Of a stretch of 64,000 nucleotides of DNA, positions 3,352 to 58,168 are shown piece by piece. The notes under the pieces are model-generated. The model did not search any database and was not told where the DNA came from. It worked only from the letters and a program-made list of their open reading frames with translations. Source of the DNA: Anthoceros angustus (Eukaryota; Plantae; Anthocerotophyta); the NCBI GenBank assembly GCA_010909165.1, contig MU008183.1, positions 620,001 through 684,000 of the forward strand. Reading direction: 5' to 3'. The position numbers and the translations under genes were made by a program. Numbering within the stretch: the first letter of the stretch is position 1; each line of letters begins with the position of its first letter.

Positions 3352-4717
3352 CACGGCGCCTTTGCTCTTTGTTGATTTTGTGGATGAGGTTGACGCAGAT
3401 GCATTGGCCGGGGTTGTAACAAGGTCTCCTTAGGACTGGTGACGGCTCCTGGTCACTAGTTGGAAGGGTGGACACCGGGTCTAAAGGTTCACAAAAGCCA
3501 CCCAAAACCATGTTTTCCTGATTTCATTAAAAAAATCATTGCCAGCATCTAGGAGCAAATCATAGAGGGATCTGTTTTCCCGTGTTTGTATGTCCGCATC
3601 TCATATTAGTTTGGCTAACCAGCAGGTACATTGCCTATAAATGCGATGATTTGAAAATCGGGGCAATTTTGTATGGACAACCAAAAAGCACACGCAATGG
3701 AAAGTCCACGTGTTGCATCGGTGTCCACCGTCATGGTCGCCGCTCTGCATTAGTGGGAGGGTCGTGGTGGCACGGGCGTTACGTGCATAAACCTTGCATC
3801 TCACCCCAATGTCGGTAGCGGGAGTGGAGGAAGATTCGGACGCCTACCGCTCGTATGCACCACTGCGAGCGACCCCGTCTGCGAATCGTTTGGAAGTGGC
3901 TTGCCACGCCTGCATGCGATGGAGACCCCACCTCTCGGACGGACTAAAACGAGAATTCCACATGGGCGATGGAAATTGGAAGTTGCCCGCACTGGTGGCA
4001 ATCACAACATGGGCAGTTCCTTTCAAGCACGCTGGAGTGATCCGCGCTTCATTGCTTGGTCCTTAAGGAATTTGGTTGAGGCGGGGCTGGCGGTGCAAAC
4101 TCGCGACCTTTGCAGCGTGTTGATCAACACGGATTCCACTCTGGGGTTGGGCGGTGTGAATGGTGTGGAGGGCAAAGCACGACATGTCCAGTGTACTTAC
4201 TTGGTGGTCAAGGATAAAATTGGAGAAAGTCATATTGCTACATGTGTGTGTGCGTGTTAGTGCGGCTATATGTGAAAGCGATTGAACATCGTGTTTGATT
4301 GGATTGTCACATGACATCCATTGTCATCTTCGTACACCGCATTTTATCTCGTGGGTTTACAACATACATAGTCTTCCTAGCGAGGAGATTAGGAAACGAT
4401 TTGGCGATTGTATTGATCGCTTTCATGCATGCGAATGGGCCGACGCTTCTTTGAAATCGGTCCGTTGTTTGAAAATCCATACCTTGCACGATTGTGCGAC
4501 AGACGCCCATGAGCTCGCTCATCAAACACCCGGCGCAATCATCTGAACACATTCTCGAATCGTCACCACTCCCATGCTTCCTAGCTTGCGTGCTCCACCA
4601 GCGTGTTCGTTGTCTAGGTCTCCGGGGACCTTGCCGCCTGATGTGTTTGTTGTGTTCATAGCCTGCTTGCATGCACGTTCTACCACAGTGCCAGATACCA
4701 CCGGCTGTCCGGTGCTT

Positions 4718-6353
4718 AAGACCCACACCGGTTCCTCCTACCAGAATCCTCGAAACAAACACGTAGCCTATCCACTGTCCGCACGACACACCTCGATCTG
4801 TGAAGCAAAGTTTTCCAATCCTACATCCCCCACCATCTGGCTGTCAAGCACACCCGGAGGAGGGTGCTCTTCTGCCTCCTTCACTTGCTGCTCCGCATCC
4901 CCAAGGACCATTGAGTTGTCGCCTGCAGCTGCTTCACCACTTGCCATATGACCCTTGGTCTCAGGCTTCCTCGTTGGTCTCTGCTTCAACGACACATATG
5001 AACCCCGGGCACCAGCCATGTTGTTCACCATGGGCTCCTTATTGAACGCCTTTCCGCCTCCATAGCCTCTCGCCCACCTCCTCCTCTTCCGTCGGCCCGT
5101 CCATGGAATTGATTCAAGGTCCATGAATTGAGCGCACTGGGATCCACATCAATGAAATGACATTACGGCATAAGCGAGCAGTGCTATCATACCCGACCGA
5201 TCCTGCATCCAGACCCAATCTCCTCATGTCTGGTGAATCAACCTCTTCAAGAGTCTTAGGGGCTTCGATAGGGGAAACAACCCGATCATCCGCGGTGTTG
5301 TAACACAATTTTAGTTCCTTTGCCGCAAACAGTTGTCACTCCACCGCCAAGTTGCGTCGGTTCTCTGAGCACAAACGGTTGAGGCACACAATCCTTATCC
5401 AAGCTCCCTGCGGCGCAAGTGAAAAGTCCCATCGTCGGCTCGACAATCTTTGTCACATTGGTTTTATGCCAGTAACATGTCGTCACAGCACCCCTGCACG
5501 CTTCCATCAGGACTTCTCTCACCATAGATGTGTCATCCGGAGAATGGAAGACCACACCGGTTCCTCCTACGAATCCTCGAAACAAACACGTAGCCTATCC
5601 ACCGTCCGCACGACACACCTCGATCTGGAAGCAAAGTTTTCCAATCCTACATCCCCACCATCGGGCATCACACGGAGGGTGCTCTCCTTCACTTGCTGCT
5701 CCGCATCCCCAAGGACCATTGAGTTGTCGCCTGCAGCTGCTTCACCACATGCCATATGACCCTTGGTCTCAGGCTTCCTCGTTGGTCTCTGCTTCAACGA
5801 CACATATGAACCCCGGGCACCAGCCATGTTGTTCACCATGGGCTCCTTATTGAACGTCTTGCCGCCTCCATAGCCAGGCTCCTCGCCCACCTCCTCCTCT
5901 TCCGTCGGCCAGCTGTCCATGGAATTGATTCGAAGATCCATGAATTGAGCGCACCTGGGATCCACATCAACAGAAATGACATTACGGCATAAGCGAGCAG
6001 CTATCATACCCGACCGATCCTGCGCATCCAATCTCCCTCTCATCTGAATCAACCTCTTCAAGAGTCTTAGGGGCTTCGATAGGGGAAACAACCCGATCAT
6101 CCGCGGTGTTGTAACACAATTTTAGTTCCACGTTCGGCAAACAGTTGTCACTCCACCGCCAAGTTGCGTCGGTTCTCGAGCACAAAGCGGTTGAGGCACA
6201 CAATCCTTATCCAAGCTCCTGCGCAAGTGAAAAGTCCCATCGTCTGACTGTCCTCGACAATCTGTCACATTGGTTTTATGCCATGTCGGCACACCTGCGC
6301 TTCCATCGACTTCTCTAACCATAGATGTGTCATCCGGAGAATGGAAGACCACA
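4718..6353. repeat. Direct tandem duplication, ~800-830-bp unit
   Basis: 4718-5547 aligns with 5548-6344; boundary motif AAGACC(C)ACA at 4718, 5548 and 6345. Confidence 0.9.
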
Positions 6354-9300
6354 ATACGAAATACAGGATGTGGTGATGCCTTTGAACGCATGATGACCCC
6401 TTCAAACTCGCCTTGGTAAATCTTGTGTCATACTCTCGTGATTGGGGATCTAGATCCAAGCCTCAGGAGGTCTAACAACAACAAAGCATACGGTCGGGGC
6501 TCTACAAACCGGGCCATGTTCACTATGTTCCCACACGATCCCGACCTTGGGTTTTTCGGCTTGGAGTCGTTCACGATTGTCATCGGCTTATCCTCGGTGT
6601 GGTCGATTTCAAGGCACGCGTTCGACTCCTCCATCGCTTCCAAGCTCGGCCTTGAATATGTGCTCCTTGAAGTTCTCGGTAGGGCACCCCACTCAAGGCA
6701 AGTGTTGGCCGCACACATGAAAGACACATCCCCACCGGTCAAATGCAAGCACGTTCGAATGTATGCGGTGTGAATGCCTCCACTTTCCATGACTTATAAG
6801 GACAAGAAGCGGCAAGAGAGAAACTCGATTTGGGTATAGCTAAGTGTTCATCGAGGACCACGATTTTTGAAGGCGGTGGAAGTTACTAATCGATTCACCA
6901 TGCGATGTCGGGATATCGTTCTGAACCTCTTCAAATGTCTCACTGCAAATGCTTGGCGATGTCACATGGATGAGGTTGAGTTTTTGGCCTTGTCCACCCA
7001 CACGAACATTTGTTTCAATGTCAATTCTCCACCAGGACTTTCATGCATCTTGTCTTCAAGTTGTTGTTCCCAGTGCATTCGATGCCACGAAACACTTCCA
7101 TACCCTCAGTAGGTATACTAAGCTCCTTTGTGTCAATGACCAAGTTTGCTCTAACCCTTGTCTTCCTTGAATTCTGGGCCTTTATTTGTGAGAGCCCGAG
7201 CTGCTTCCACACCTCGAACAGCTGTTGTCTCCCACTTCTCAAAGATTTCATCCACGCATTTCCACACCTCATCATCAACCTTCGCAACACAATAATCCGA
7301 TTGTCCGGTTATCCACGAGGCGGTGATAGTGACCTTAGGTCCATGCTTGGCGCATCCCACTTAGGAACCACCGCCCGGGCATATATCTCCAACTTCCGTC
7401 TAAGTCACACTTGACCCATCATTGGCCTTCATCTCGATTCGATGTACCTCACACGGTCGATGAAAGTAAAAGTCTTCCGGCATCCGCAATGGTGTTGTGA
7501 TCGGTGGCAACTAACCTCATCTCCTCATTTGTGAGGCCAGCAAGAACATATGCATCCATCCACATGCTCTTGAACCAATGGATACAAGTCGGCTAGTCTA
7601 GATCGCTGGAAGGAATGATTCCCTCAATACATAAAATTTGTACACCCCGATCCACCTTATCCATGTCAAAGAAGTTCTTGTTGGGACCGGGCCGGGTCTA
7701 CAATGACAATCATGGGCAGCACACCACCCACGTGGAATGCTTCATCTTTTGCATCAAAGCCTCCACCCAAGCAGTCTAGCTTACGTACCTTGCCAAACCG
7801 ACATAGTTCTTCCGGAGGTCTACAAGCTGATGGACAGCTTTAACGTGGACTCCCATACTCTCTTTCCCAATTGCCTCCTCGCAACATCTCTCGGCCTCGT
7901 CGCTCTGTCGTCATCCGTGGCTCTGACTGCCCTGGCCTTCTCTATGAACTTTGGGAGCTCTTCGCCCCTCGGACATCATGTGCCATTCGTTGCTTGCCGC
8001 TTGTTGACCCCTTCCCACCCGCCGTCCTCCACGCGATTGCCGGCCTCTCAATCCCTTCCTCTTTTTCTCGATTGTCTACCCATACGGTCGGCTTGAACCC
8101 TTCGCGTGCCATGGGCAGACCCAAATCCCGGTCCGTTGCATCCACCTCGCCCCATCGTCATCTTCCACGTCTTCGTCGGGGCGGATATGATCCACCGGCC
8201 TCGGGCCATCGGCGAATGCCATCGCCAAACCCCTCATTGTCCGGTCCCCACCCGCATCCTCATCTTCGTCGTCGCTAGCCGTCATCCGTGGCCTGACGCA
8301 TCCTTGGCCTTCTATGAACTTTGGGAGCTCTTCGCCCCTCGGACATCATGTGCCATTCGTTTGCCGCGCGACCTTCCCACCCCGCCGTCCTCCACGATTG
8401 CGGCCTCTCAATCCCTTCCTCTTTTCCTCGATTGTCTACCCGCAATCGATCGACGGCTTGAACCCTTCGCGTGCCATGGGCGGACCCAAATCCCGGTCCG
8501 TTGCATCCACCTCGCCCCATCGTCATCTTCCACGTCTTCGTCGGGCTGGATATGATCCACCGGCCTCGGGCCATCGGCCAGCCATCGCCAAACCCCTCAT
8601 TGTCCGGTCCCCACCCGCATCCTCATCTTCGTCTTCGTCGGCTAGAGAGGTTAGGGTGACATCATCGCTGACCATGGGCTAGGAAAAACCAGCGGCTCGG
8701 AGTGTGGGCGGACTGTTGCTTGGACTCGAAGCACCGGACGTCCGTGGCCTGCAACCCTCTTACCGTGCTTTCATTTCGCAAACTAGTTCAAACGTGTCCA
8801 TGGAATTATATTTTGTGCCACCACCTTTTGTTGCGTTTCACTTGGCAGATCATGCATATCGGTGGCGGTTGCCAGCGACACTGCAGCATGGATTTACTGA
8901 TCCCATTAGCACTAGGAGTTGCCATTTGATTTCCACTCGCAGATGCCATGCTAGGGGCCTTCTCGCAGATGCCCTTTCGATGTAAGCAATGCATCATCCG
9001 CACACCTTCTAAACATTGCTGGTGCAAAGCCTTGTGGAAGACACGATGTCCATCACCGTGTCGCAATGCCTCCAAAAGTTCTTGCCTTTTCCGCTCTGGT
9101 TGTATACAATGTCAAAGTTCTTCACCGCACTATACTCTAATCCATTGCGGGTCCAGACGAAGAGGCTCCTTGTGCTTGAGCCGGATCGATATATACACCG
9201 CTCATCCTTCGTGATCGCGTGAAAACAATCGCTCCCGCACATTTCTTTTTTTTGGTGTGGTTCGCATCATCCTCCATCGACACATACAAGAAGAGCAAGT

Positions 9301-40534: not shown

Positions 40535-41109
40535 GTGATCCTCTTCCTGGCTGGAGTGTCCATGACAGGAGACGTCATCCTACACTTGGGCTTCCTGGAC
40601 CGGATCATGAATTATGAGATCAAGAGAATGCGCCGAGTTCACCAGAGATTTGGCTCCTTCCTGTCAGGTGTGCTGGAGGAACATATCCTGCGAAATCCCG
40701 CGGCTCTGCGAAGGGTGTACCACGAGCTGGACGCGGTGGTAGGGAAAGAGAGGTTGATCACGGAATCCGATCTCCCAAACCTTCCCTACTCCCAGGCTGC
40801 GGTAAAGGAAACCTTCCGCCTTCATCCCGCCGGGCCGTTACTGGTTCCTCACGCAAGCAGCGAGGCTTGCGAGGTGGCAGGCTGCCACATCCCTGCCGAG
40901 ACCACCACCTTCGTGAATGCGTGGAGCATCGTCCCCCGCTGGAGTTTCAGCCCGACAGGATCGACGTGCGAGGCCAGCACTTCCAGCTGCTCCCTTTTGG
41001 CTCCGGCAGACGAGCTTGCCCTGGTATCCACCTGGGGATTGCCATGCTGCAGTACTCGCTGGCGAGGCGGGTGCATAGCTGCGATTGGGCCTGGCCACAG
41101 GGTCGGTGA
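40535..41109 (+). pseudogene. Cytochrome P450 (CYP71-clan-like) pseudogene fragment
   Basis: [30 protein letters not shown] (ExxR) and, after a frameshift, [13 protein letters not shown] (heme motif). The I-helix and part of the PERF region are deleted. Confidence 0.85.
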
Positions 41110-43152
41110 GGTCAGATGTTCTGCAAGCCTCAACCTCCCCGTTCTCAAAGCCATGGATCACAGAAGCCGCGTAACGTCGGGGAATCAGAATGCTTGCTGT
41201 CTACGCCGGGTTTGTTTTTTGATTTATTTTCAAAATACTAAATAATAATGAAAAAAACAAATCACAGAAGCCGCGTAGCGTAACACACACACAGTGCCTC
41301 CACTCTCCACTCGACGTCACGCTCTTTTTCTTTTCCAGTGTCTCATACTCTGATTGCCCACCGTATTACAATATCCTACTTGAATCCTGCTGGCTCAAAA
41401 ATACCTCTCTTCCAAGATGTCCCCCGCCTTTGCCCTTCGCTACTTGTCCTGCAGACACATTCTTTACTCATTTCAATCGGTAAATGACGACGGAGACTTC
41501 AGTCAAGCGAAATCCAGCCCGGTTAACAGCTGTCCGTCGTTTCTGGAGGCAGTTAGCTTAAGCAGCAAGATACCTTGCAATTCATCATTCCTCCCACCGC
41601 AAAGAGAAAACCCATATAAACTGATAACAAAATTGTCTAGGACCCACATACAGACAAGGACATCGGAGACCTGGGGCCATGCCTAGACTGTTGCATTCTT
41701 TGTGCATTAGGTACAATTCCCAAGACTTTCTCTCCAATGCAGCCCGGCTTGTGGTAAAATCTATCCTCGTCATAACTCCAGAGACTACCCAAAAACGAAG
41801 TTGTTGATTGGTCTCCCCAGATGTAATTGCGTGGACGGTCTTCAGAAGTCCCTTTGGGGACTTCTGCAAAGGGACTTCTGACTTCCCTTGGGGTCATGAC
41901 TTCAAGAGTCTTGCGCAGAAAAGCAGTTCTTTCCCGTTGACGTTACATGAGGGCAAACTTGGGTGATATTCAAGCCATGCAATTCCAGCTTGTTTTCATT
42001 CAACCCAGATTCCTAGATGAGGGGCAGAGGTGATCCATCCCAGCCAAGTTTTGTGACTTGCTGACACATTTGTGTGTGGGGAAGCGTGGGAATGGCAGCG
42101 TAGGATGGAGATTGCGAGCTCACAAACCAGGTACATATGTCGATATGTGAAGGGCGTTCAGGCTGTTGCAGCTTGGTGCAGCCCACCGTGCAGCAGCTGG
42201 GAACCAGTCCAGTGGTTTGAGTCAACTTTTGTTCTGTGGCCTTGTCCAACGTCGGGTACACTGGCAGCATATACGTGGGGTAGCAAGGTCAAGCCGCAGC
42301 GATGCATGAACAGTTCAACAAGAAGACAAGAAGAGACATGTAACTTCCCAATTCTGACCTCGACGACGCTGGCTGCCAGCAACACAGCGGGAGCATCAGA
42401 GCAGATTCAACACCAAGGCAAGTAAAAATGAAGCCTCGCCAGCATCCTGACTCGCTGCCGGGCAGCCCATGAGAACGGAAGGGAAGTGAGACAGTCGTCG
42501 AAATACCCGACATCCATGCCCGGCTTTCGAGTGGTGGGAGTTTCCTCACTTGGCTGGGTAAGGCTGGCGGCATGGGATGGTGGCGGCTCCAATTAACGGG
42601 AGGCTTGCCGCGTCCAAAGTATGATTTGTGTAGTGAGTGGTGGTAGCGGCTCTCCCTCTCCGCGGGGCGGGGTTTTGTTACGCGCTTGGACTGACGTCCC
42701 CATTCGCAAGCCGCCCTATCCTGCGCTCCTGCGCTCCTGCGCTCCAGCGCTCCAACGCTCCTGCGCCTGGCGATCTAAATCGGTGCCGTTTTCTGGCGCA
42801 GCACGCCATGGCGAGCCGGTGAACGCGCCTCATCCGCCTCTTCATACAGCAGACCGAGCGGACAACGCCAGAGGAAGCCAGAACAGCAACTCCTGCAGCG
42901 GCATCTCAGCTCGTCCGCCCAGGGCATTGCACCAACCGTCTCCGAGGACACAGCCGAGGAGCGGTACACGAGGGGGAGGAATTGGAAGAAGAGAATTGCG
43001 AAGCTCAACTCCGCAAACCGGAGTATGCTATCCGTGTGCCGCACTGCAGGAAGCACGCTGTTACCACACGATTGCAGCTGCTTCGGGAATTGCACGCTTC
43101 TGCGATATACCGTAGTGTGGAAGAACTTGAATTGTGCTGTCCAACCCGAGGC

Positions 43153-44058
43153 ATGGCTCGCCAGGAGCTGAGCCACCGCATGGTGAGAACCAACGGGATC
43201 GACATGCACATCGCGGAGCAAGGGAGCGGGCCGACGGTGCTTCTTTTGCACGGCTTTCCGGAGATCTGGTATTCCTGGAGGCACCAGCTCCCGGCGCTGG
43301 CGGCGGCTGGATTCCACGCTGTGGCTCCCGACATCCGGGGCTACGGGCTCACCAAGGGCCCGGACGATCCCCGCCAATACGACGCGCTCAGCATGGTGGC
43401 GGATCTGGCGGGCCTGATCGAGGCTTTGGGAGAGAAGCAGGTGTTTGTGGTAGGGCACGACTGGGGCGCTCACCACGCGTGGGATCTGTGCCTGCTGCGC
43501 CCCGATCTTGTTAGGGCCGTCGTCTGTCTCAGCGTCCCGTTCCAGCCGAGGTTGGCGTCCGGGAGCTGGCTCTCGCGTTACCGCAGGGAGCTGGGGGACA
43601 ATTTCTACATGGTGAGATTCCAGAAGCCCGGGCTGGCGGAAGAGGATTACAACATCTGCGGGACGGCAAATGCGCTGCGGAGAATGTTTGCGTACGGGCA
43701 GGAGGTTCCCGCCAATCCTATCAGCGAAAAGGAGTTGGCTGTCTACGCCAAGAGCTTCGCAAGCACCGGATGGACTGGCGCGCTGAACGCGTACCGGAAC
43801 ATAGAGAGGTCGTGGGAGCTCAAGGCTCCTTGGACGGATTGTGGTGTCGAAATGCCTGCGCTCTTCATGGTGGGGGAACACGATGCTGTGTATGCATTCC
43901 CCGGGATGCGGGAGTATGTGCATGGAGAAGGATTTCGGAAGTATGTTCCCAATTTGGAGCAGATCGTGGTGCTTGAGGACAGTCACCATTTCATCCAGCA
44001 GGAGAGACATGAGACTGTCTCGGCTCACATGATCGAGTTCTTCCAAAACCACTTGTGA
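43153..44058 (+). CDS. Soluble epoxide hydrolase-like alpha/beta hydrolase, 301 aa, intronless
   Basis: NGIDMHIAEQG, LLHGFPEIWYSWRHQL, APDIRGYG, VGHDWGA (nucleophile Asp), GEHD, HHFIQQE (catalytic His). Confidence 0.93.
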   Translation: MARQELSHRMVRTNGIDMHIAEQGSGPTVLLLHGFPEIWYSWRHQLPALAAAGFHAVAPDIRGYGLTKGPDDPRQYDALSMVADLAGLIEALGEKQVFVVGHDWGAHHAWDLCLLRPDLVRAVVCLSVPFQPRLASGSWLSRYRRELGDNFYMVRFQKPGLAEEDYNICGTANALRRMFAYGQEVPANPISEKELAVYAKSFASTGWTGALNAYRNIERSWELKAPWTDCGVEMPALFMVGEHDAVYAFPGMREYVHGEGFRKYVPNLEQIVVLEDSHHFIQQERHETVSAHMIEFFQNHL

Positions 44059-47371: not shown

Positions 47372-48961
47372 CTAGGAATCCTGAACCTTGGCTTCCAGCT
47401 CCTCTACCCTGCGCTTCAGCTCTTTGATGTACTCCACAGCCTCGTCCAACATGTCCGCCGTGTTGCTCTGCTTGTCCAGATTGGGCAGCAGCTCCTGCAG
47501 CCTCTTCATCCTCTCCCCGATCCGAGTCCGCCTATTCCTCTCAGCAATGCTGCGGGGGTGAGTGGCACAGCCGCGCTTGGCCCTGGTGCGGCAGGGGATG
47601 GAGCTCTCCCCGTACTGCTGCGGGCTGCGGGGCTTGAGGGGGCTGGGCAGGCTGGCGAACCGGGTGAGCGGCTGCGGGTTGCCGGCCTGGGGATCCAGCC
47701 CCTGCCCCCGCAGCCTGGAGGGATCCGACAACCAGCTCTTCTCCAAATCCGCAGCGCTCCAAGGCGCCTTGGCGGAGTCAGTAGGGGAGAGCACGTCCCG
47801 CATCACCTCGTCCCTCCCGAACATGGACATGGAATCCCTGGCCCCCGTCACATCCAGCGGCAGCACATTCTTCATGGGAGACCTGGCCATGGCGTCCATC
47901 ATCAGGGGACGCTGGATCCCGTCCATCTGGTCCTGCTCCTCGATGGCCAGCTTGTCCAGAAAATCTGCCGGGCAGCTCCCATGCCGCAGCAGGCTCCCGC
48001 GTTTCATCGGCACCTCGGAGGCCTCCGCCATGGGGCTGTTCCCAGACTTCCCTGCCTCCAGCATGAAGTCATCCCTCACCTGCTGGTTGCTTCCAGCCGA
48101 GCCGGGAGACCCCTGCCCTGACGACGGCGGCCACATCCCCTGCACAGGCAACGGAATCCCGTATCTCTGCGCCATGCTAATGTCGTACTTCAAATCCCCG
48201 TTGAACGCCTTCATCCCTGCTGCCGCCGCTGCAGCCTCATCTATCCTAAGGCCTCCCTTCCCCGCCTTGTCCAAGTCCCCGTCATCTCCCGACTCCGACA
48301 CCGTCCCGAGCGTGCTGCCATCGCACCGCTTCCCTTGCGCCATCAATTCGCTCAGGCTGTCCAAATCCTGCTCCCGGATATCATCAATCATCTCCGCCAG
48401 CAGCGCACTGGGAGCCGAACTGTAGCGGCTCAGATTAGCCCTGTGCGGCGAGCCGGAGCCCGGAGCAAGCGAATGCGGACTCTCCCCCGACTGCATCACC
48501 ACTCCCGGGATGCACTGGCTCATCCGATTCACATCCACCACCTCGCTCACGTTGCCGGCATCCGGCAACCACTTCTTGTTACTGAAACCTTCCCACCTGT
48601 GCTGCATCGGCCCCGCCCCGGAATGCCCCGAGCTCATCTCCAGCGGCCTGGCGCTGGCGACGCTGCTGAGCCCCGTGGCCAGCCCCGACGAAAACCCTTG
48701 CTGCAGAGGCACCACCGTGTAGGGAGCCGACGTCATGAACAAGCTCTGCTGCTGCTGCTGCTGCTGGTGTTGTTGCTGCTGCTGCTGCTGCTGCTGCTGT
48801 TGCTGCTGGAGTTGCTGCTGATGCTGCTGGTGCAGCTGCACAATCTTGTCGGTGCCGCTCAATCCCGCCGCCGGCACCACTCCCGCCATCGCCCCGCTCA
48901 CATGACTGTGCAGCATCGCGCTCAGCTCCTCCTCAATTCCTCCCATCCTCAGCGGACACAT
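47372..48961 (-). CDS. bHLH transcription factor, FBH/AKS (bHLH130-like) subfamily, ~529 aa, intronless CDS
   Basis: PCRTRAKRGCATHPRSIAERNRRTRIGERMKRLQELLPNLDKQSNTADMLDEAVEYIK; RxxS-P motifs LSRYSSAP, LRHGSCPADF, LTRFASLP; polyQ. The start ATG (48961) is inferred. Confidence 0.93.
   Translation of the reverse strand: MCPLRMGGIEEELSAMLHSHVSGAMAGVVPAAGLSGTDKIVQLHQQHQQQLQQQQQQQQQQQQQHQQQQQQQSLFMTSAPYTVVPLQQGFSSGLATGLSSVASARPLEMSSGHSGAGPMQHRWEGFSNKKWLPDAGNVSEVVDVNRMSQCIPGVVMQSGESPHSLAPGSGSPHRANLSRYSSAPSALLAEMIDDIREQDLDSLSELMAQGKRCDGSTLGTVSESGDDGDLDKAGKGGLRIDEAAAAAAGMKAFNGDLKYDISMAQRYGIPLPVQGMWPPSSGQGSPGSAGSNQQVRDDFMLEAGKSGNSPMAEASEVPMKRGSLLRHGSCPADFLDKLAIEEQDQMDGIQRPLMMDAMARSPMKNVLPLDVTGARDSMSMFGRDEVMRDVLSPTDSAKAPWSAADLEKSWLSDPSRLRGQGLDPQAGNPQPLTRFASLPSPLKPRSPQQYGESSIPCRTRAKRGCATHPRSIAERNRRTRIGERMKRLQELLPNLDKQSNTADMLDEAVEYIKELKRRVEELEAKVQDS
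48745..48835 (-). repeat. CAG/CAA polyglutamine tract in the bHLH gene
   Basis: (CTG/TTG)n on the plus strand encoding QQQHQQQLQQQQ... on the minus strand. Confidence 0.95.
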
Positions 48962-51900
48962 TTTGATTCCTCCTCCCTCCTCCCTCCTCCCTCCCCCTGC
49001 CAAGCCACAAGCTTCGCAAATCCAAATCACACGAATCCGCTCCCTCCACCACCTCCCTCTCTACTTCCCAGGCCTCTCCGCCACAAGCCTCCGCCCTCGG
49101 GCACACGGAGTCCCTCCTTCCCCCATCTCCAGCTCCGCAATCACAAATCCGGTCCGCAAGCACGCAGGTTCACCGCCACGGCACTCCTCCCCCGGATTCA
49201 CCGACAATGCGGCCCGCCCCGCTCCCGGGCCTTCCCTGCAGCTCCCGGAAGGCCCTAGCAGCAGCCACAGCCAATGGTGAAACCTGAATCCGCCGCCACA
49301 GACAGAGCGAGACACACCCACCGCCAGGCGCTGCCGCGAGACGAGCCAACAAACAGAGACGTGGGAGGCTCAGGCGCAGCGGGTGGAGGGGTACAAGGCA
49401 GTTAACAAGGCAAGTGGGAAGGCGCCTGGCTCTGCTGCCGGTATATCGGCTATGGCGGCAGTGGACTGAAGCCGGGGCTCGGGGTTGAAGATGAGGAAGG
49501 GCGACGCACTGTAGATGCCAGCCAGAGAGATTCGAAGGCGCAGGGAAGGAGGAGTCGGAGTCGCATTATAAAATCTTACCTTTTGCAGTAGCCCCGGGGG
49601 AACTCTGAAAAGGGACGATACAATACATACAAGATCAAATCCGAGCCTGCGCCTCCGCCTGCGCCAGGCAATACAATCCAACCGTGAACTTCCGTCCTTT
49701 TCCGCCCCTTTTGCCTCCTTTAACATTGTAGGAAGCGTAAGCCCCCATTTCAGCCTTTTAGCCTTTACTTCGCATCCCGGCATTTATCGTCCTTTTCCTG
49801 GCCACCACTTTTGCAGCCGCTTTTCCAGCCACCGACTCGCCTCCCCATAAACCATCCTTCATGGTACATACGTAAACCCAAAGGCATTCCATCATTTCCC
49901 GGTTTCGGGTGCATCATGTTTCACCTGGGACTCCAAGCCCTTTGTCTCGGTCTCCTCTACCCAGGAATTAGGCGTATACCTGCCCAGCACTTTTAATCTC
50001 GAATTCACAACTCAATATCAAAACCGTGAGTGAACGGCAGTAGCATGGCTATTGAACCTGCTACCCTAACTCCTTACATCAAGTATTTTGATCACTATAA
50101 ACAGTTTAAAATTTTAATCTGGCATTTATACTCAATATCAAAACCGTAAGTGAACTGCAGCAACACATGGCTGCTAGCTTGGCTCCTTATATCAAGTATT
50201 TGGCATTCGCACTTGTGGATGAGAAAGGCGAGGCAGTTAAAGTTTCTAACAATATCAAACACCAATGGGTGAGAAAGGCGAGGCATCTGTTCAGAAGCAA
50301 GCAAAGAAGGTGATTTGGAGTGATATGGCAGAAGAAGAGAATGCTAACGGTGTTAGTGGTGGAGGAGGTGGTGCTACGTTTGATGGTGACAAGGATGGCA
50401 TTCATGGTAGCGATGGTGCACACTTGGGCGAAAAGCTACCCATTCTTGCTGATGATGCCCTCCAGTTGTTTGGAAGTGGGATGGAGACTTTATTGTAAAA
50501 GAAAGATGGGGAAAATCCATATACCCCCTGACAAGGAGGAACAACCGTTTGAGAGGGCATCAAACCATGGGGACTAACCCCCCTTGTCGCCAATCTTGTA
50601 ACTACCTATCGCACCAAGAATGTCATAGTCGGGGATAGAAAAGGGCCTACCTACCACCAGTGTCGAAGATGTCGTCTCGTCTGCGCTTGTGGTCGTCCTA
50701 TATACCGCGTTGGCTAATGCCCTCTGCAGGGCGATAGACACTCGTTGCCTGAAGAAAGCCACAATACAGGAAAGAAGAAGGCCAACCCCATTCCTGCAAG
50801 TGAAACGTGATCCCTCGGGACCACGTTGTTGAGTTCCCAATATGTGCACCACAACATCAACTCGCAATTGCTGAATGCATATGTTTGCGGCAGTTTGCAT
50901 GCATACTTATAATCTTGGGGCTTGCAAAGCACCTAGACTTATAATCTTGGGGCTTGCAAAGCACCTCCTCTGCCACATAAGCTGCCCATCATTCAACAAT
51001 CCCTACAATGATCCTCTTGATGGCGGAGTTATCAACTGGTCCTCCTCAATTGAAATGTGTTTGATAAGCTGCTACTCAGATTACTAAAAAAACCTTCCAT
51101 AAATTAAAAAAAATTGAAGTACTAAGTAAAAAAATTAAATCAAACAGTATCTTGTTATGAGATAACAAAATTCTCTCATGGGATAGACAGAGGGATACAC
51201 AGAATTCCCTAACCGCATAAAAACAAAATGTATTGTTATTACACTGTGCAGTACACAAAAGGAACCAAGCAGAAAAGAAGGCGTCGTTTCTGGAGGTGCA
51301 TCTACATAGACTCGCCATAACGTACTTGGAGGCAAACGGATATGACGTCCACACATCTTGCCATAGATCGGCATCAGAATATAAGCAGGTTACTTTATGG
51401 AAGGGCAAGCGCAGCGTGGCAGGGGCAGCACTTGCATGATTGCCCGTACGCGGAGTTGTGACAAACGGCGCATGTGAGTAGATTATGGGCAACAAAGATT
51501 TGAAGCAGACTATGAACCCGATTTGCGAAGCGGAGTTAACCGGACAAGGACGACATGTGTGTATGCGAGCATATAGCTATCCGGTGACGTGAGGAATGAC
51601 GTGTGTGTGCAGAGTCCGCGGACTTTACCGAGCTGATTCGATGCAGTGGCGGCTCATTTTGGGGCGCCTCGACCTACGTGCACCGCGCTGCACATGCCTG
51701 CCTCGCTGGGTGGGGCACACCCACACGCGGAACGGTCTGAGTACATGTGTTGTACATCCACATGTACAGTACATACATGACGGAATCTTGCTCTAATATA
51801 GACCCAGGATGAGCTCACTGTAATCACCAACGGCACCCCGTGCACGTCCAGGTGCAAATGCGAGTCACTGGATGGCGTGATTTGACCAGGTGAGGGAGGG

Positions 51901-52059: not shown

Positions 52060-52233
52060 TCAGCAGAGGCGAGGAGGATGCCAGGAAGAGAGCAGGAGAG
52101 GTGATGATGGGGCCAGGGCAATATCAGGTCCTGAGAGGTGAGGAGGGAACGGGGTAACGACAAGGTGGGGTGGCTGGGGTGGTGAGATGGGGAAGATGGG
52201 TGGTGGGTAGGCGAGGAGGGAGGAGTTATGTGA

Positions 52234-52266
<33 letters not shown>

Positions 52267-54719
52267 ATGGGTGATGGTGTCATGGGGTAGCAGGGGAAGG
52301 GCCGGGGCTGGGGCAGGGAGGGAGGACAGAGTGGTGGTGTCCAGGTGGTGGGCTTGGAACCGGAATTTACCGCCGCGATCGTCCTCGGCGCTGGCCCAGC
52401 TGCCCTCCATCACTGTGGTGGCAGCCGGGCAAGAGTGCAGGTCGATCTGGCCGGTGTAGTGCACAGGACAGGGCTTGCCAGGAGCGTACAGCTTCGTCAT
52501 GCGGAGTCTCAAGATGTGGGACTGTCGGGACACTGTGCCTGTGCAGAAGCCACGTGCAAGGGATGTGAGATGGAGGATACGTGGCATGGAAGCATGGGAA
52601 GGATGGGGTGGAAGGCAGGAAGGAAAGGAAGGACGGAATGAAATGGAGGAGTGGAACACTGTGGTGATGGGTAGGAGGACTGACCCAGGAATGTGAACGT
52701 TCCTGCCACGTCGCTGCCGAAACCGAAGATGCGGTTGCTGCTGGTGATGACCAGGGCACCTCCGTCCACCAGCTGAGTGCCTGCTGCGCTTTCGGGGTTG
52801 CACACCTCTCGGTAGCCGGTCCAGTGGACTCCATAGCCGGCTGCTGCTGCTGCCCCTGTTTCAAGCTTCTGCAGGGAGAATGTGTGGGTGTCGGAGGGCT
52901 CGAATATGGCCACCATGTCGTGGAAGGTCCAGTGGCCTCGGATCTGCTCCTGGCCGTCTGCGGAGCTCCTGATGCCGTCGTACTGGAGGCGGTAGCTGGG
53001 GTTGTTGAGGTACTGCTTGCGGAGCACCATCCGATCTTCCTCCACGAAGTCACCTGTGGGCGGGATGGATGTTGGCTAATACAAAGTTCCTGGTGATGTA
53101 TATGAGCAGTAGGACTGCAGCGAGGAGTTTTGGAGGTGGGGTCCCAGGGTGTCTCACCTTCCCATGTCCACTCTCCCAGGTAGTCCATGCCGAAGCCGCA
53201 GGGCCTGGTGTCGTCCATGAGGAATGCCTTTGCGCTCATTTGCTTCTGGCTCCTGCGTTGCATATACCATCCTTCCCATGCCTCCAGCTCTCCAGCAACA
53301 TTGAGTGTTTTCTGAAATCAACACACTTAGGGCATGCATGGCTGAGCCTGTGCGACACTCAGGCTCATGGGTGAGACTTGCGTACCGAGGTGATTGCTTG
53401 GGCTTCGGAGATGGTGGTGATGCCAGTGGACGGAAGTGGAGAGTGAAGATGGAAAGTGCCGTACTTCTGTTGCTTCACATCAGACCATTTGCCCTCCATG
53501 GTGATGGAGTTGGTGGGAGTCAGAGACAACTGTCCCCAGAAGTGCAGGCAATGAGGGCGTATGTCCGGCTGGTACATCTTCACAGAGGTAATCCTCAGCG
53601 CATGATCTTTTTGACAGTATGTTCCTGTTCAAAGATACCAACATGGGTTGTCATACCTGGAGGCAGAAGTTTCACGTTGTCGCTCTTTCATGCAGCAGCA
53701 GAAATGGATCCTACCTGTGTGTGTGAAGGTCCCTTTTGTGTCTGTACCAAAGCCAAACACCACGTTCTGGCTGGTAAACACGAACATTGTGTCGTCGGTG
53801 CGCCGTTTATCGCTGCCAGACTCCCAGTAACCAGTCCAGTTGTGTCCAATTGCTGAGACCACAGATGAGGCATCTCTTTGAAGGGAGAAAGCTCCAGATT
53901 GGTTTGGACCCACTGACCAGGATCCTTCCAGCACCTCCTGCCCTTTCCTGAACAATCTTCTTCCACTGTACTGAATGGTGTAACCAGGGCTCGTCACATA
54001 TTGCTTCCGAAGCAGCACTTGGTGCGTGCCAATGGTCTCACCTGCACCCTTCCAGACCGTCAGCACATCACATCAGCACACCTCCAGGGGCTTGACGACT
54101 GCCAGAGCATACCTTCCCACGTCCACTGCCCGATCGCGTCATGTCCATAGCCACATAGCCTGTTGCTGCCGGTCTGGAACAACGCAGCTCTCATGCTGTA
54201 TGTCAACCCCTCACACACATACGAGCCCTTCCAACAATCCAGAACGTTCTGGGAACGAGGCTCCTGCTGCGGGTCAAACTTCGCAGCCTCAAGAAGCCTG
54301 CTCAGTTCCCTTGCTGTCTCCTCCTCCCTTGCAGCATCAGCAACTGGGCTGTGGAGCTCATGTTTGATATCACCTGCCAACCTAGCCTCCTTCTGCACAT
54401 CCTTGATCCGCCCCGTCAGTCTCCCAATCAGCTGAGACCATCTCTGCCTCGTCAGAAACGCGAGATGCCGAGGCAGGGAACCGGACTGCTCCTCCCAGGC
54501 CAGAGCTTGCGTGAGCAAGCCATCAGCCTCCTTCAGCAGAGGCTCCACTGCCTGCACCCAACTGTCCCCACCCGCGCCCTGAGGCTCCACAAGCACCTGC
54601 CGGAGCTCCTCCCACGTCCCCAACGACTTGGTGGCCTCAGCAGCCGATTTGCTCACATGCTCCAGCAATGCCATGACTCCCGTCCCTGTAGCCGCTGCTG
54701 GGTCCGCCATGGCAGCCAT
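52060..54719 (-). CDS. Unrecognised 724-aa protein: N-terminal helical domain, four tandem W.G..G.G.D..G.F..G..K.Y..Y.G..EG.W..G.F.L repeats, Pro-rich tail; 6 exons
   Basis: Exons 54719-54113, 54041-53715, 53624-53386, 53311-53158, 53053-52685, 52538-52060 total 2175 nt, are stop-free, and are separated by GT-AG introns with consistent phases. Confidence 0.85.
52237..52264. repeat. (GGCT)7 microsatellite inside the predicted last exon
   Basis: Seven perfect tetramers encoding PASQPASQPAS on the minus strand. Confidence 0.95.
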
Positions 54720-54899
54720 TCGAGCCTTTGCTCCAAGCGCAAGTCTGGCTGTTAGTGTCACAATGATGCTCCGAGCTAAGCTTCAGAGACTTGTGCTCTC
54801 TGCCTCCTTGGTGGTGATGAATCTCGTACATCCTGTGTGGGCCTGCACAGACAAGTGAGTGCTTGCTGACAGTGATTCGAAAGTCTGGAGAATCCTGTG

Positions 54900-57230
54900 A
54901 CCTGATTCCAAGCCAGTACAACATGACCGCAGCTGGCTATGACCGGGAACGTCCTGGTGAAAGCATTTCTTTCATCTGGTTTGTTCAGCCATTTTGCCCT
55001 GAGGAGTTGGCTCGATCAGTGATGCACGGCTGGTCAAGATCCTCAGAGCGAGGCTGTTCTTTGTTGCCAGGTATACCGCCAAAACGTGAGTGGGGGTCGA
55101 TTCAGCCCGAAACCAGTTTTATCTGACCACTTCTGACGGCAGCATGTGACTTGTACATGTGCACGACAATCTTAAGCCGGATGTCGCAATGATACGAAAA
55201 TCGCATGCCTGTCTGTTATAGCGGTGTCTGGCTTAAGGTTGTCGGCGGCTACTGAGCATGGCATTGAGATACAAATTCAATTTGCTGGAGACTGGGCCAG
55301 GGCTTCTCTGCTAGAAAGAACATGGTATAACGCACAAGCATGGCAGGGTGCAGCAGAAGGCTCACCTGGAAGGACGAGAACTTCATGGAGACAAGCTCCT
55401 AACCATGAGCAATTACAAAGCGTGGGAAACCTCAAATTGCATTCGCATTGCGAAGAAGTTGCGTGCTCCTCATCAAACCTGAGCTGGCTGCAAGGCCACG
55501 TCCGGTTCGTGGCAAAACGACTTTGGCTACTGTCTGGGCTGGTCTTCTTCTTACCAACCAAACTGGTGGAGACCAAGAACGTAGACTGGCTGAGAGATGC
55601 AACTCTTAGCGGGTGACAACCGCAATCATCCAGGCATGCAGGCTGAGAATTTGCAGGACACAGCTAAAGGCCGATATGGGACAAGCATGTTGGCAAGTTT
55701 CCAGTACAATCTCCTGTCAAAGGATAACGTGCAGAAGGAGAGTGGTCGGCCAAGGAGGGGAGCGGTTCTGGCGAGGTACACCGGGTGACACCACCAGCCT
55801 GTCTCTTTGCTCCTCTACCACTGCCACATGCAGAACCCTTAACCCTAACCCGGGCAACTGCATAGCCCGCCTAAGGCCGGCCATCCCGCAGAAACCCTGG
55901 CCGCTGTTTTGTGCTGTGTTGCACAGGTCGTCCTTTTAGGTTTTGCTGTCTGAGGGTTTGATCAAGTCCTGGGCTGTGCGAGTGAGGGAGCTGTTGGTGA
56001 GCCGGAGAGATGCCAAGGATGACGAGAAGGCGGATTTCTGTGAAGCCTTTCAGGCTCGGGAGCCTTCATGTTGCACACGCTGACGAGGCTTCCATTTGAC
56101 GCCATTCTAGTTGTTGTCCGGGCAGTTTGCGGCGTCCTAGGTTTTTAGGGTTTGAGCCTTGAGTTCTGTCGCCTCCAGGTTTTCGGTTGACGACTTCACG
56201 TCTGAATCGCATGATGTTGGATCGTAACACTCTGTTGATGCACTTGCAGAAGTTGTGGAACTTGCAGAACTTAGAGTGTTCGGAATTGGACGACTTCTCA
56301 GTAAGCCGCTTTCCCACTTCTGTGGAACCCGCTTGAAGATAGACATTTCGTCCATCTGTGGAGCTTCTTATAGGTTTGACAAGCTTGCCAAGTAGCTTTG
56401 GCTCCTCTACTTCACGAATTGTAGAAGACCTTTGCTTTGTGAGCTGCTTGTGCATCGCCTGCTGTAGGACCAGCACATGTCTTCTCCCTTTTTAACACAG
56501 CAGTTGATACAGCCATTCCCGTTGCACCTACACGCGAGCAAGCTTGCCAGCAGCTGGCAACTGACTGAACAAGGTCCTGACGCTTGCCTTTGGAATCAAT
56601 ATTGCATCCAGAAAAACTATGGTGTACAGGACTACTGATGTGATACGTGAAATGAGATCCTGAGGGGCTGGACGTATAGTGTGGAGGCTCTGTAGAACAT
56701 CGCACTGCTGACTGCTGTTTCAAGACCATGGCCAGGTCAAGACCTACCAAGATGTGAACTTGAGTACATGACATGATTTGCTTGCCGGGCAGCATTTGCA
56801 AGAAGGGAAACGACCCTACACATGCTACTAGATGGCGGAAGCTGCTGGAGAGCACGCACCTGAAACTGCGCGCATACATTTCAACACGCTTAAGACCTGG
56901 AGAAAGTAAAACGCTTCATAACCTAGGCTTCTTGATGTCGTGACACAAACGCAAAGCAACATTCAGATCTTCACAGGCTGGCTTTAGACAAGAACGAGGA
57001 ACCACCTACAAGGTAAGAGCCTGAGCTTGCAAGAGCTCACCTCACCGGCACCCTCCATCTTGGAAGGTGAGCTTCCGAGCTTGCAAGAGCTCACCTCACC
57101 GGCACTCTCCATCTTGGAAGGTGAGCTTGCAAGCTCAGGCTGTGTAGGTGTAATGACCGCAGCATCGATCACTTCGACCTCGATGCCGGCATGCATCACG
57201 CATACAGAATGTAAGCTAATTTAAATTTCT
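54900..57230 (+). pseudogene. Probable decayed NB-ARC-LRR (NLR) gene
   Basis: GKTTLATVW at 55511-55537 (GTSGSGKTTLA if two 1-nt insertions are removed); LLSKDNV 55711-55731; CTGRP 55920-55934; SHDV ~56207-56218; then LQKLWNLQNL, LTSLPSSFGS (56376-56405) and LPSLQEL..LEGELP. Order matches P-loop, kinase-2, GLPL, MHD, LRR. Confidence 0.5.
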
Positions 57231-58168
57231 TTCATGGAACTAGCGAGCTGAATCGACCGTGAGGCAGGGAGTAGCTTGCTCCTCTACTTCACGAATTGTA
57301 GAAGACCTTTGCTTTGTGAGCTGCTTGTGCATCGCCTGCTGTAGGACCAGCACATGTCTTCTCCCTTTTAACACAGCAGTTGATACAGCCATTCCCGTTG
57401 CACCTACACGCGAGCAAGCTTGCCAGCAGCTGGCAACTGACTGAACAAGGTCCTGACGCTTGCCTTTGGAATCAATATTGCATCCAGAAAAACTATGGTG
57501 TACAGGACTACTGATGTGATACGTGAAATGAGATCCTGAGGGGCTGGACGTATAGTGTGGAGGCTCTGTAGAACATCGCACTGCTGACTGCTGTTTCAAG
57601 ACCATGGCCAGGTCAAGACCTACCAAGATGTGAACTTGAGTACATGACATGATTTGCTTGCCGGGCAGCATTTGCAAGAAGGGAAACGACCCTACACATG
57701 CTACTAGATGGCGGAAGCTGCTGGAGAGCACGCACCTGAAACTGCGCGCATACATTTCAACACGCTTAAGACCTGGAGAAAGTAAAACGCTTCATAACCT
57801 AGGCTTCTTGATGTCGTGACACAAACGCAAAGCAACATTCAGATCTTCACAGGCTGGCTTTAGACAAGAACGAGGAACCACCTACAAGGTAAGAGCTTCC
57901 GAGCTTGCAAGAGCTCACCTCACCGGCACCCTCCATCTTGGAAAGGTGAGCTTCCGAGCTTGCAAGAGCTCACCTCACCGGCACTCTCCATCTTGGAAAG
58001 GTGAGCTTCCGAGCTTGCAAGCTCGGAAGCTGTGTAGGTGTAATGACCGCAGCATCGATCACTTCGACCTCGATGCCGGCATGCATCACGCATACAGAAT
58101 GTAAGCTAATTTAAATTTCTTTCATGGAACTAGCGAGCTGAATCGACCGTGAGGCAGGGAGTAGCTTG
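56402..58168. repeat. Near-identical tandem duplication, ~880-bp unit, each with internal 51-52-bp repeats
   Basis: 56402-57277 aligns with 57278-58168. Differences are mainly homopolymer length (CTTTTT vs CTTTT; GGAAGG vs GGAAAGG) and extra GAGCTTCC units. Confidence 0.95.

Follow-up and report, generated by a model that had tools for sequence, protein, structure and literature searches.

The window, by which we mean the whole 64,000-nt stretch of DNA that was analysed, is eukaryotic and contains a minus-strand gene, which opens at the ATG at 54719-54717 and which reading frames and GT..AG borders divide into six exons. The gene is expressed, and the lineage is hornwort-type. A 2618-nt RNA-like contig from the public run X1 is 100% identical to the locus and has joints at exactly the five predicted introns; in plus-strand orientation the joints are CT..AC, i.e. 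GT..AG on the minus strand. The same introns are seen in RNA-like contigs from three related organisms at 90-95% identity, with joints shifted by at most 3 nt at two of these introns. Based on the joints in X1 and in these three organisms, the gene is real, transcribed, spliced and conserved in close relatives. Further, the indels listed for the related species keep to multiples of three within exons (+3 at 54484, -3 at 52844) but not within intron 4 or downstream of 52300. The parts of the gene and its neighbours are as follows, the barrels being those predicted in the next section.

54720..54900, minus strand: 5' leader; the X1 contig continues ~438 nt past 54900 (~620 nt beyond the start codon)
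54719-54113, minus strand: exon 1, from splice borders and RNA joints
54240..54719, minus strand: first part of exon 1, residues 1-160, an orphan amphipathic helical region
54113..54239, minus strand: last part of exon 1, first half of barrel 1 (strands 1-4), with a phase-1 donor after W-T-W-E-G
53715..54041, minus strand: exon 2, from borders, RNA joints and repeat match, with the halves that end barrel 1 and begin barrel 2
53386..53624, minus strand: exon 3, second half of barrel 2 (b' type) and a linker, with phase 0 at its end
53158..53311, minus strand: exon 4, paralogous to the exon 1 tail and coding for the first half of barrel 3
52685..53053, minus strand: exon 5, paralogous to exon 2 and coding for the halves that end barrel 3 and begin barrel 4
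52280..52538, minus strand: coding part of exon 6, with the half that ends barrel 4 (b' type), a short tail, and the stop at 52282-52280 in the transcript frame
52060..52279, minus strand: proline-rich extension of the ORF in the genome frame, probably 3' UTR
47372-49030, minus strand: neighbouring ORF, bHLH by family match
42982-44058, plus strand: neighbouring ORF, alpha/beta-hydrolase by family match
40535-41245, plus strand: neighbouring ORF, cytochrome P450 fragment by family match

The long 5' leader of the X1 contig has a stop in frame upstream of the main ATG. An upstream ORF of 95 codons (54924-54637, minus strand) also lies within the leader and overlaps the main ATG.

The two ends of the gene fared differently with respect to the first-pass annotation, which had given its span as 52060-54719: the start is retained, and the stop probably lies at 52282-52280. 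Within a run of C at 52299-52301 the RNA has one base more than the genome (the two part at 52298/52299), from which the X1 contig is otherwise indistinguishable. With the extra base the frame closes at 52282-52280 and the protein has ~651 aa; without it the ORF runs to 52060 and the protein has ~724 aa, a change of 73 residues. In one related species the proline-rich stretch carries indels of -17, -9, +2 and +1. Because of the RNA frame and these frameshifting indels, the proline-rich tail to 52060 is taken as 3' UTR, and the coding region probably ends near 52280, shortly past the fourth repeat, rather than at 52060. The one-base difference itself may reflect a polymorphism or a mistake in the assembly.

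The neighbouring bHLH, alpha/beta-hydrolase and P450 ORFs belong to ordinary plant genes and show no obvious connection with the barrel gene. In the ~2.7 kb upstream (54700-57400), stops occur throughout all three plus-strand frames, the ORFs have no Pfam match, and neither a P-loop nor GLPL was found on either strand. There is no NB-ARC or NACHT domain in the gene and no NB-ARC signature in the upstream 2.7 kb. A direct repeat of ~130 nt, at ~56400-56530 and ~57270-57400, has near-identical translations and may mark the ends of a repeat element.

Four repeats and their predicted fold

Comparison of the translated exons with one another brings out three pairs of paralogues. Exon 2 matches exon 5 (E 2e-17, 37% over 114 aa), the exon 1 tail, i.e. 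its last 43 residues, matches exon 4 (E 5e-6), and exon 3 matches exon 6 (E 8e-11). On this comparison the array is one of four homologous units of ~100 residues each in ABAB order, and the three matches imply that the four units arose from a duplicated two-unit block. Each unit is split by a phase-1 intron after a W/F-T-x-x-G motif, and the boundary between the two double units is marked by a single phase-0 intron. The exon phases of this RNA-supported gene model would be a record of the duplication of a two-barrel unit. The motif positions are all kept across barrels and across species, and no further copy of the repeat was found in the window. The first reading of the locus, as ~160 aa of amphipathic helix followed by four repeats of ~100-110 aa, is confirmed, with ~155 aa of predicted helical sequence before the four ~100-residue units.

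In the window protein every barrel is encoded across an intron. A natural homologue, P0005 (~30% identical), was modelled in its place, with an alignment of 24 family pieces. The model (pLDDT 82.9, pTM 0.81) has two sets of eight strands, and in an exhaustive structural comparison each half matches eight-stranded up-and-down barrels. The streptavidin-like-fold matches include a quinohemoprotein amine dehydrogenase domain, the cathepsin C exclusion domain, YceI and PliC. With the whole model as query, Foldseek returned, at E ~1e-3, proteins with barrels in tandem as well as single-chain dimers of streptavidin. As modelled, the barrels are streptavidin-like, that is eight-stranded, antiparallel and up-and-down with ~100-120 residues, as the avidin fold requires, so that the initial description of them as avidin-like holds for the fold.

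Membership of the avidin family by sequence is not supported. The window exons do not match Avidin (PF01382) at E<=10, 29 barrel pieces give no match at E<=1, and a PDB search with the barrel profile found no avidin. P0002, a relative from another hornwort, scores 17.8 bits against PF01382, below the cut-off of 24.

Relatives of the barrel array

A profile of exons 5 and 2 was scored against all 1.84 billion representative proteins and gave nine matches, from which four true clusters remain. The other five, the long proteins P0004 and P0006-P0009, were rejected since the match is confined to a 20-28-residue L-R-K-Q-Y...Y-x-G stretch; P0007, the sole one of these to be inspected, is built of repeats. 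The true relatives differ in the number of units. P0002 (451 aa), from the transcriptome of the hornwort Nothoceros aenigmaticus, has four units and no head, and is labelled a complete ORF in its source. P0005 (227 aa) has exactly two units and likewise no head, and is found on transcript-like contigs in three samples; a rotifer spliced leader was looked for on transcripts of this type and none was seen. P0001 and P0003 are exon-sized pieces from two genomic contigs of one sample. One contig, L001, holds the 3' part of a gene resembling the window gene, with its exon 4 at 67% identity. In P0001 (L001 678-1178), the counterpart of exon 5, loops of both barrel 3 and barrel 4 carry Gly/Ala-rich insertions totalling ~45 residues, which suggests that the barrel loops tolerate large insertions.

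Other routes to relatives yielded little. A word search with the family alignment among proteins of 231-735 aa returned P0002 and no further member, and a scan of metagenome contigs gave 66 pattern matches with none confirmed. Pfam listed no family above its cut-offs for any of the six exons even at E<=10, nor for the 29 barrel pieces. A PDB sequence search with the profile of exons 5 and 2 gave nothing significant. Designed 'Pizza' propellers, picked up in the PDB with a single-barrel profile, were rejected as spurious because the score sums six weak matches to a G-x-G-x-D-x-x-G turn, each insignificant alone. The language-model features of exon 5 (ESM Atlas) led to unnamed and phage clusters only and were uninformative, and a literature search for a head joined to a barrel array found nothing relevant. 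Collectively, the survey of homologues and of annotated families that had been proposed at the outset returned four true clusters and no named family with this architecture. Judged by sequence, the family is very small and unnamed, and seemingly confined to hornwort-type plants and a few further samples.

A further relative lies on the genomic contig L002 (Logan SRR33208241), whose predicted U-box reaches 26.3 bits, the cut-off being 21.4. At 4100-7862 the predicted U-box and a TPR-like helix are joined in frame to six barrels. A predicted intron of consensus form, GTAAGT...TTTTGCAG, links the U-box in frame to the first of the six units, and the units follow the same three-exon plan, repeated three times. 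Read from a genomic contig with predicted splicing, the U-box and the six-barrel array would form one protein. The contig ends inside or just past the sixth barrel. Exons 2-6 of the window gene match barrels 3-6 of L002 with the same exon plan, exon 2 at 56% identity. In the window gene itself there is no U-box by Pfam match in its exons, and tblastn of the L002 U-box against the entire window gave a best E of only 1.8.

A second combination was met by shape. The best match in the ESM Atlas to the P0005 double barrel (TM 0.78 by query, 205 residues, rmsd 2.8) is an unnamed rotifer TIR_2 cluster of 587 aa, in which 96% of members have a TIR domain. This cluster is absent from the profile search matches. 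The animal TIR proteins are a possible parallel, which would add to the interest of the barrels if these are a recognition module.

The N-terminal helical head

A single-sequence AF2 model places predicted helices at 13-32, 36-44, 51-79, 84-121 and 127-145, within residues 1 to ~155. The amphipathic character of the region is above that of its own composition, with a mean hydrophobic moment of 0.320 against 0.214 +/- 0.030 in shuffles, a value reached by 2 of the 500 shuffles. The head has no membrane-like hydrophobic segment, the top 19-residue window averaging 1.2 on the Kyte-Doolittle scale; no signal peptide was found at the N-terminus, and the first helix is not conspicuously hydrophobic or glycine-zipper-like. 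The model is of low confidence (pLDDT 53.1, pTM 0.33) and has no confident packing, with only residues 51-114 reaching 73-79, and Foldseek with it gave no match at E<=0.1.

The first-pass annotation had seen in the head the spacing of a four-helix bundle of the RPW8/MLKL/HeLo type. Comparison with these families did not support the assignment: Pfam hmmscan at E<=10 gave no RPW8, MLKL_N, HeLo or SesA match (PF05659, PF22215, PF14479, PF17107). The sole listings at that threshold, CM_2 and MM_CoA_mutase, both fall below their own cut-offs and were set aside. A PDB sequence search with exon 1 gave nothing significant, and no head homologue emerged from a word search that covered proteins 111-353 aa long. 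By language-model features (ESM Atlas), the nearest clusters are unnamed fungal ones at 0.92, and clusters carrying MLKL_N, SesA, HeLo or PigL_N, from fungi and oomycetes, follow at 0.86-0.88, weak scores that lie below the reliability marks. As the recognition value is 2094 against a mark of 2300 and four of the ten best family-bearing matches share a family or clan, these are leads only.

Derivation of the head from an ancestral barrel exon or intron read in another frame was considered and rejected, since blastn and tblastx against the paralogous regions were blank. With tblastn, head residues 92-153 can be aligned to L002 only across three stops. The frame of the head is kept in related species, including through a 3-nt in-frame insertion. 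That the head is long, helical and in frame across related species suggests that it has a function of its own.

Possible function and comparison with known systems

The reading we favour, at about even chances, is that the gene encodes a cytosolic protein of ~650 aa in which a binding array of four barrels, arranged as two compact double units, is combined with an exchangeable N-terminal output or adaptor domain. The barrels are read as the binding module and the head as the output because the array is seen headless with two or four units, behind a U-box with six, and in the look-alike with TIR. The barrel array would bind a peptide, a protein or a small ligand, and the N-terminal domain would be the part that can be swapped. 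Both the U-box fusion and the likeness to Gid4 suggest that the target recognised is a protein or peptide, and from the likeness to avidin it may also be a small ligand. In the window gene the helical head would stand in place of the U-box, so that the protein would bind the kind of target bound by its U-box relative and couple it to something other than ubiquitination. Candidate roles for the head are oligomerisation, scaffolding, competition with the ligase and execution of cell death.

The last of these roles has been the starting point of a more specific proposal, in which the head is an RPW8/MLKL/HeLo-type four-helix bundle that kills by membrane insertion and is restrained by the barrels until a ligand is bound. 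Five predicted amphipathic helices in ~150 aa at the very N-terminus are what this proposal would lead one to expect, the nearest clusters by language model are fungal or oomycete and some carry MLKL_N, SesA, HeLo or PigL_N (0.86-0.92), and N-terminal domains are swapped, with a U-box in the family and TIR in the look-alike, as in immune receptors. However, neither Pfam (E<=10) nor the PDB sequence search gave a match, the head model stands at pLDDT 53 and pTM 0.33 with an empty Foldseek search, and the Atlas scores are leads only; nor is there a conspicuous hydrophobic or glycine-zipper-like first helix, a head homologue among proteins of 111-353 aa, or an NB-ARC signature in the upstream neighbouring stretch. 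We regard a membrane-inserting head as unlikely. The initial idea of a non-NLR executioner joined to a sensor therefore survives in part: a binding array with a swappable output is in line with the U-box fusion and the TIR look-alike, and the executioner half is conjectural. The same idea can be carried further: tandem double barrels would do the sensing in a class of eukaryotic immune or stress receptors that has yet to be described, with a death-fold-like head, a U-box or TIR as outputs, and the window gene would be a hornwort non-NLR sensor-executioner. This extension is speculative and improbable to the same degree.

Other explanations place less weight on the head. The gene may be a partial duplicate of a U-box/six-barrel gene that has kept four barrels and no ligase, and that competes with the ligase for its target or modulates it, the head serving stability or dimerisation only. 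The correspondence of exons 2-6 with barrels 3-6 of L002 in the same exon plan, exon 2 at 56%, would fit such a decoy or regulator, but a long, helical head kept in frame in related species argues for a function of its own, and blastn and tblastx left no trace of its derivation from the ligase gene; we think it doubtful that the protein is a decoy of this kind. The four barrels could also mimic an avidin tetramer in a single chain and sequester biotin or a small metabolite, e.g. for antimicrobial or storage purposes. This is very unlikely in view of the sub-threshold Avidin score of P0002, the failure of all 29 barrel pieces to match at E<=1, the lack of any avidin among PDB matches to the barrel profile and the missing signal peptide; further, a U-box fusion suits target recognition better than vitamin capture. 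Finally, a young, fast-drifting and lineage-specific gene with no specific function might be suspected from the tiny size of the family and from the listed differences between orthologues, a partial list in which 10 of the 30 affected codons changed synonymously and 20 non-synonymously, pointing to weak constraint or a fast-evolving gene. Against this, spliced forms of the gene abound in the RNA-like contigs of four organisms, indels in the exons stay in frame, and every motif position is preserved across barrels and species, so that mere drift is hardly to be credited.

Under the favoured reading of a binding array with an exchangeable output, a known fold, the streptavidin-like barrel, would occur in an architecture that has no name in family libraries, with arrays of two to six barrels behind differing N-terminal domains. 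If the barrels are a recognition module, the family would supply plant ubiquitin and stress biology with a novel type of receptor for substrates or ligands.

Several known systems share parts of this architecture. Eight-stranded barrels are widespread and serve many functions, which weighs against the favoured reading, and known avidins are secreted. With avidin and streptavidin (PF01382) the window protein shares the predicted barrel fold, whereas it has no signal peptide, begins with a helical head and carries its barrels in tandem in one chain. BFA1 and DUF3598 proteins (5yvf, 2o62), the top Foldseek rows at E ~1e-3, likewise have two barrels per chain, but their TM to the P0005 model is only 0.22-0.29, the barrels are packed otherwise and there is no sequence relation. 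RPW8, MLKL_N, HeLo and SesA domains are, like the head, amphipathic helical regions of ~150 aa at the N-terminus before a sensor-like part; the head differs in having neither a profile match to them nor a confident four-helix bundle model. The rotifer TIR_2 proteins also join a barrel array to a signalling or effector domain, although the likeness is by shape only and they belong to another kingdom than the hornwort gene. Among ligase components, Gid4 consists of one barrel, docked onto a RING complex. Gid4 and Gid10 (PF09783), the substrate receptors of the GID/CTLH E3 ligase, have no sequence relation to the barrels described here, and the one barrel of Gid4 contrasts with arrays of two to six, as does the window gene in carrying no ligase domain. 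The U-box of the six-barrel relative is the domain of the plant U-box (PUB) E3 ligases, from which the window gene is set apart by having none.
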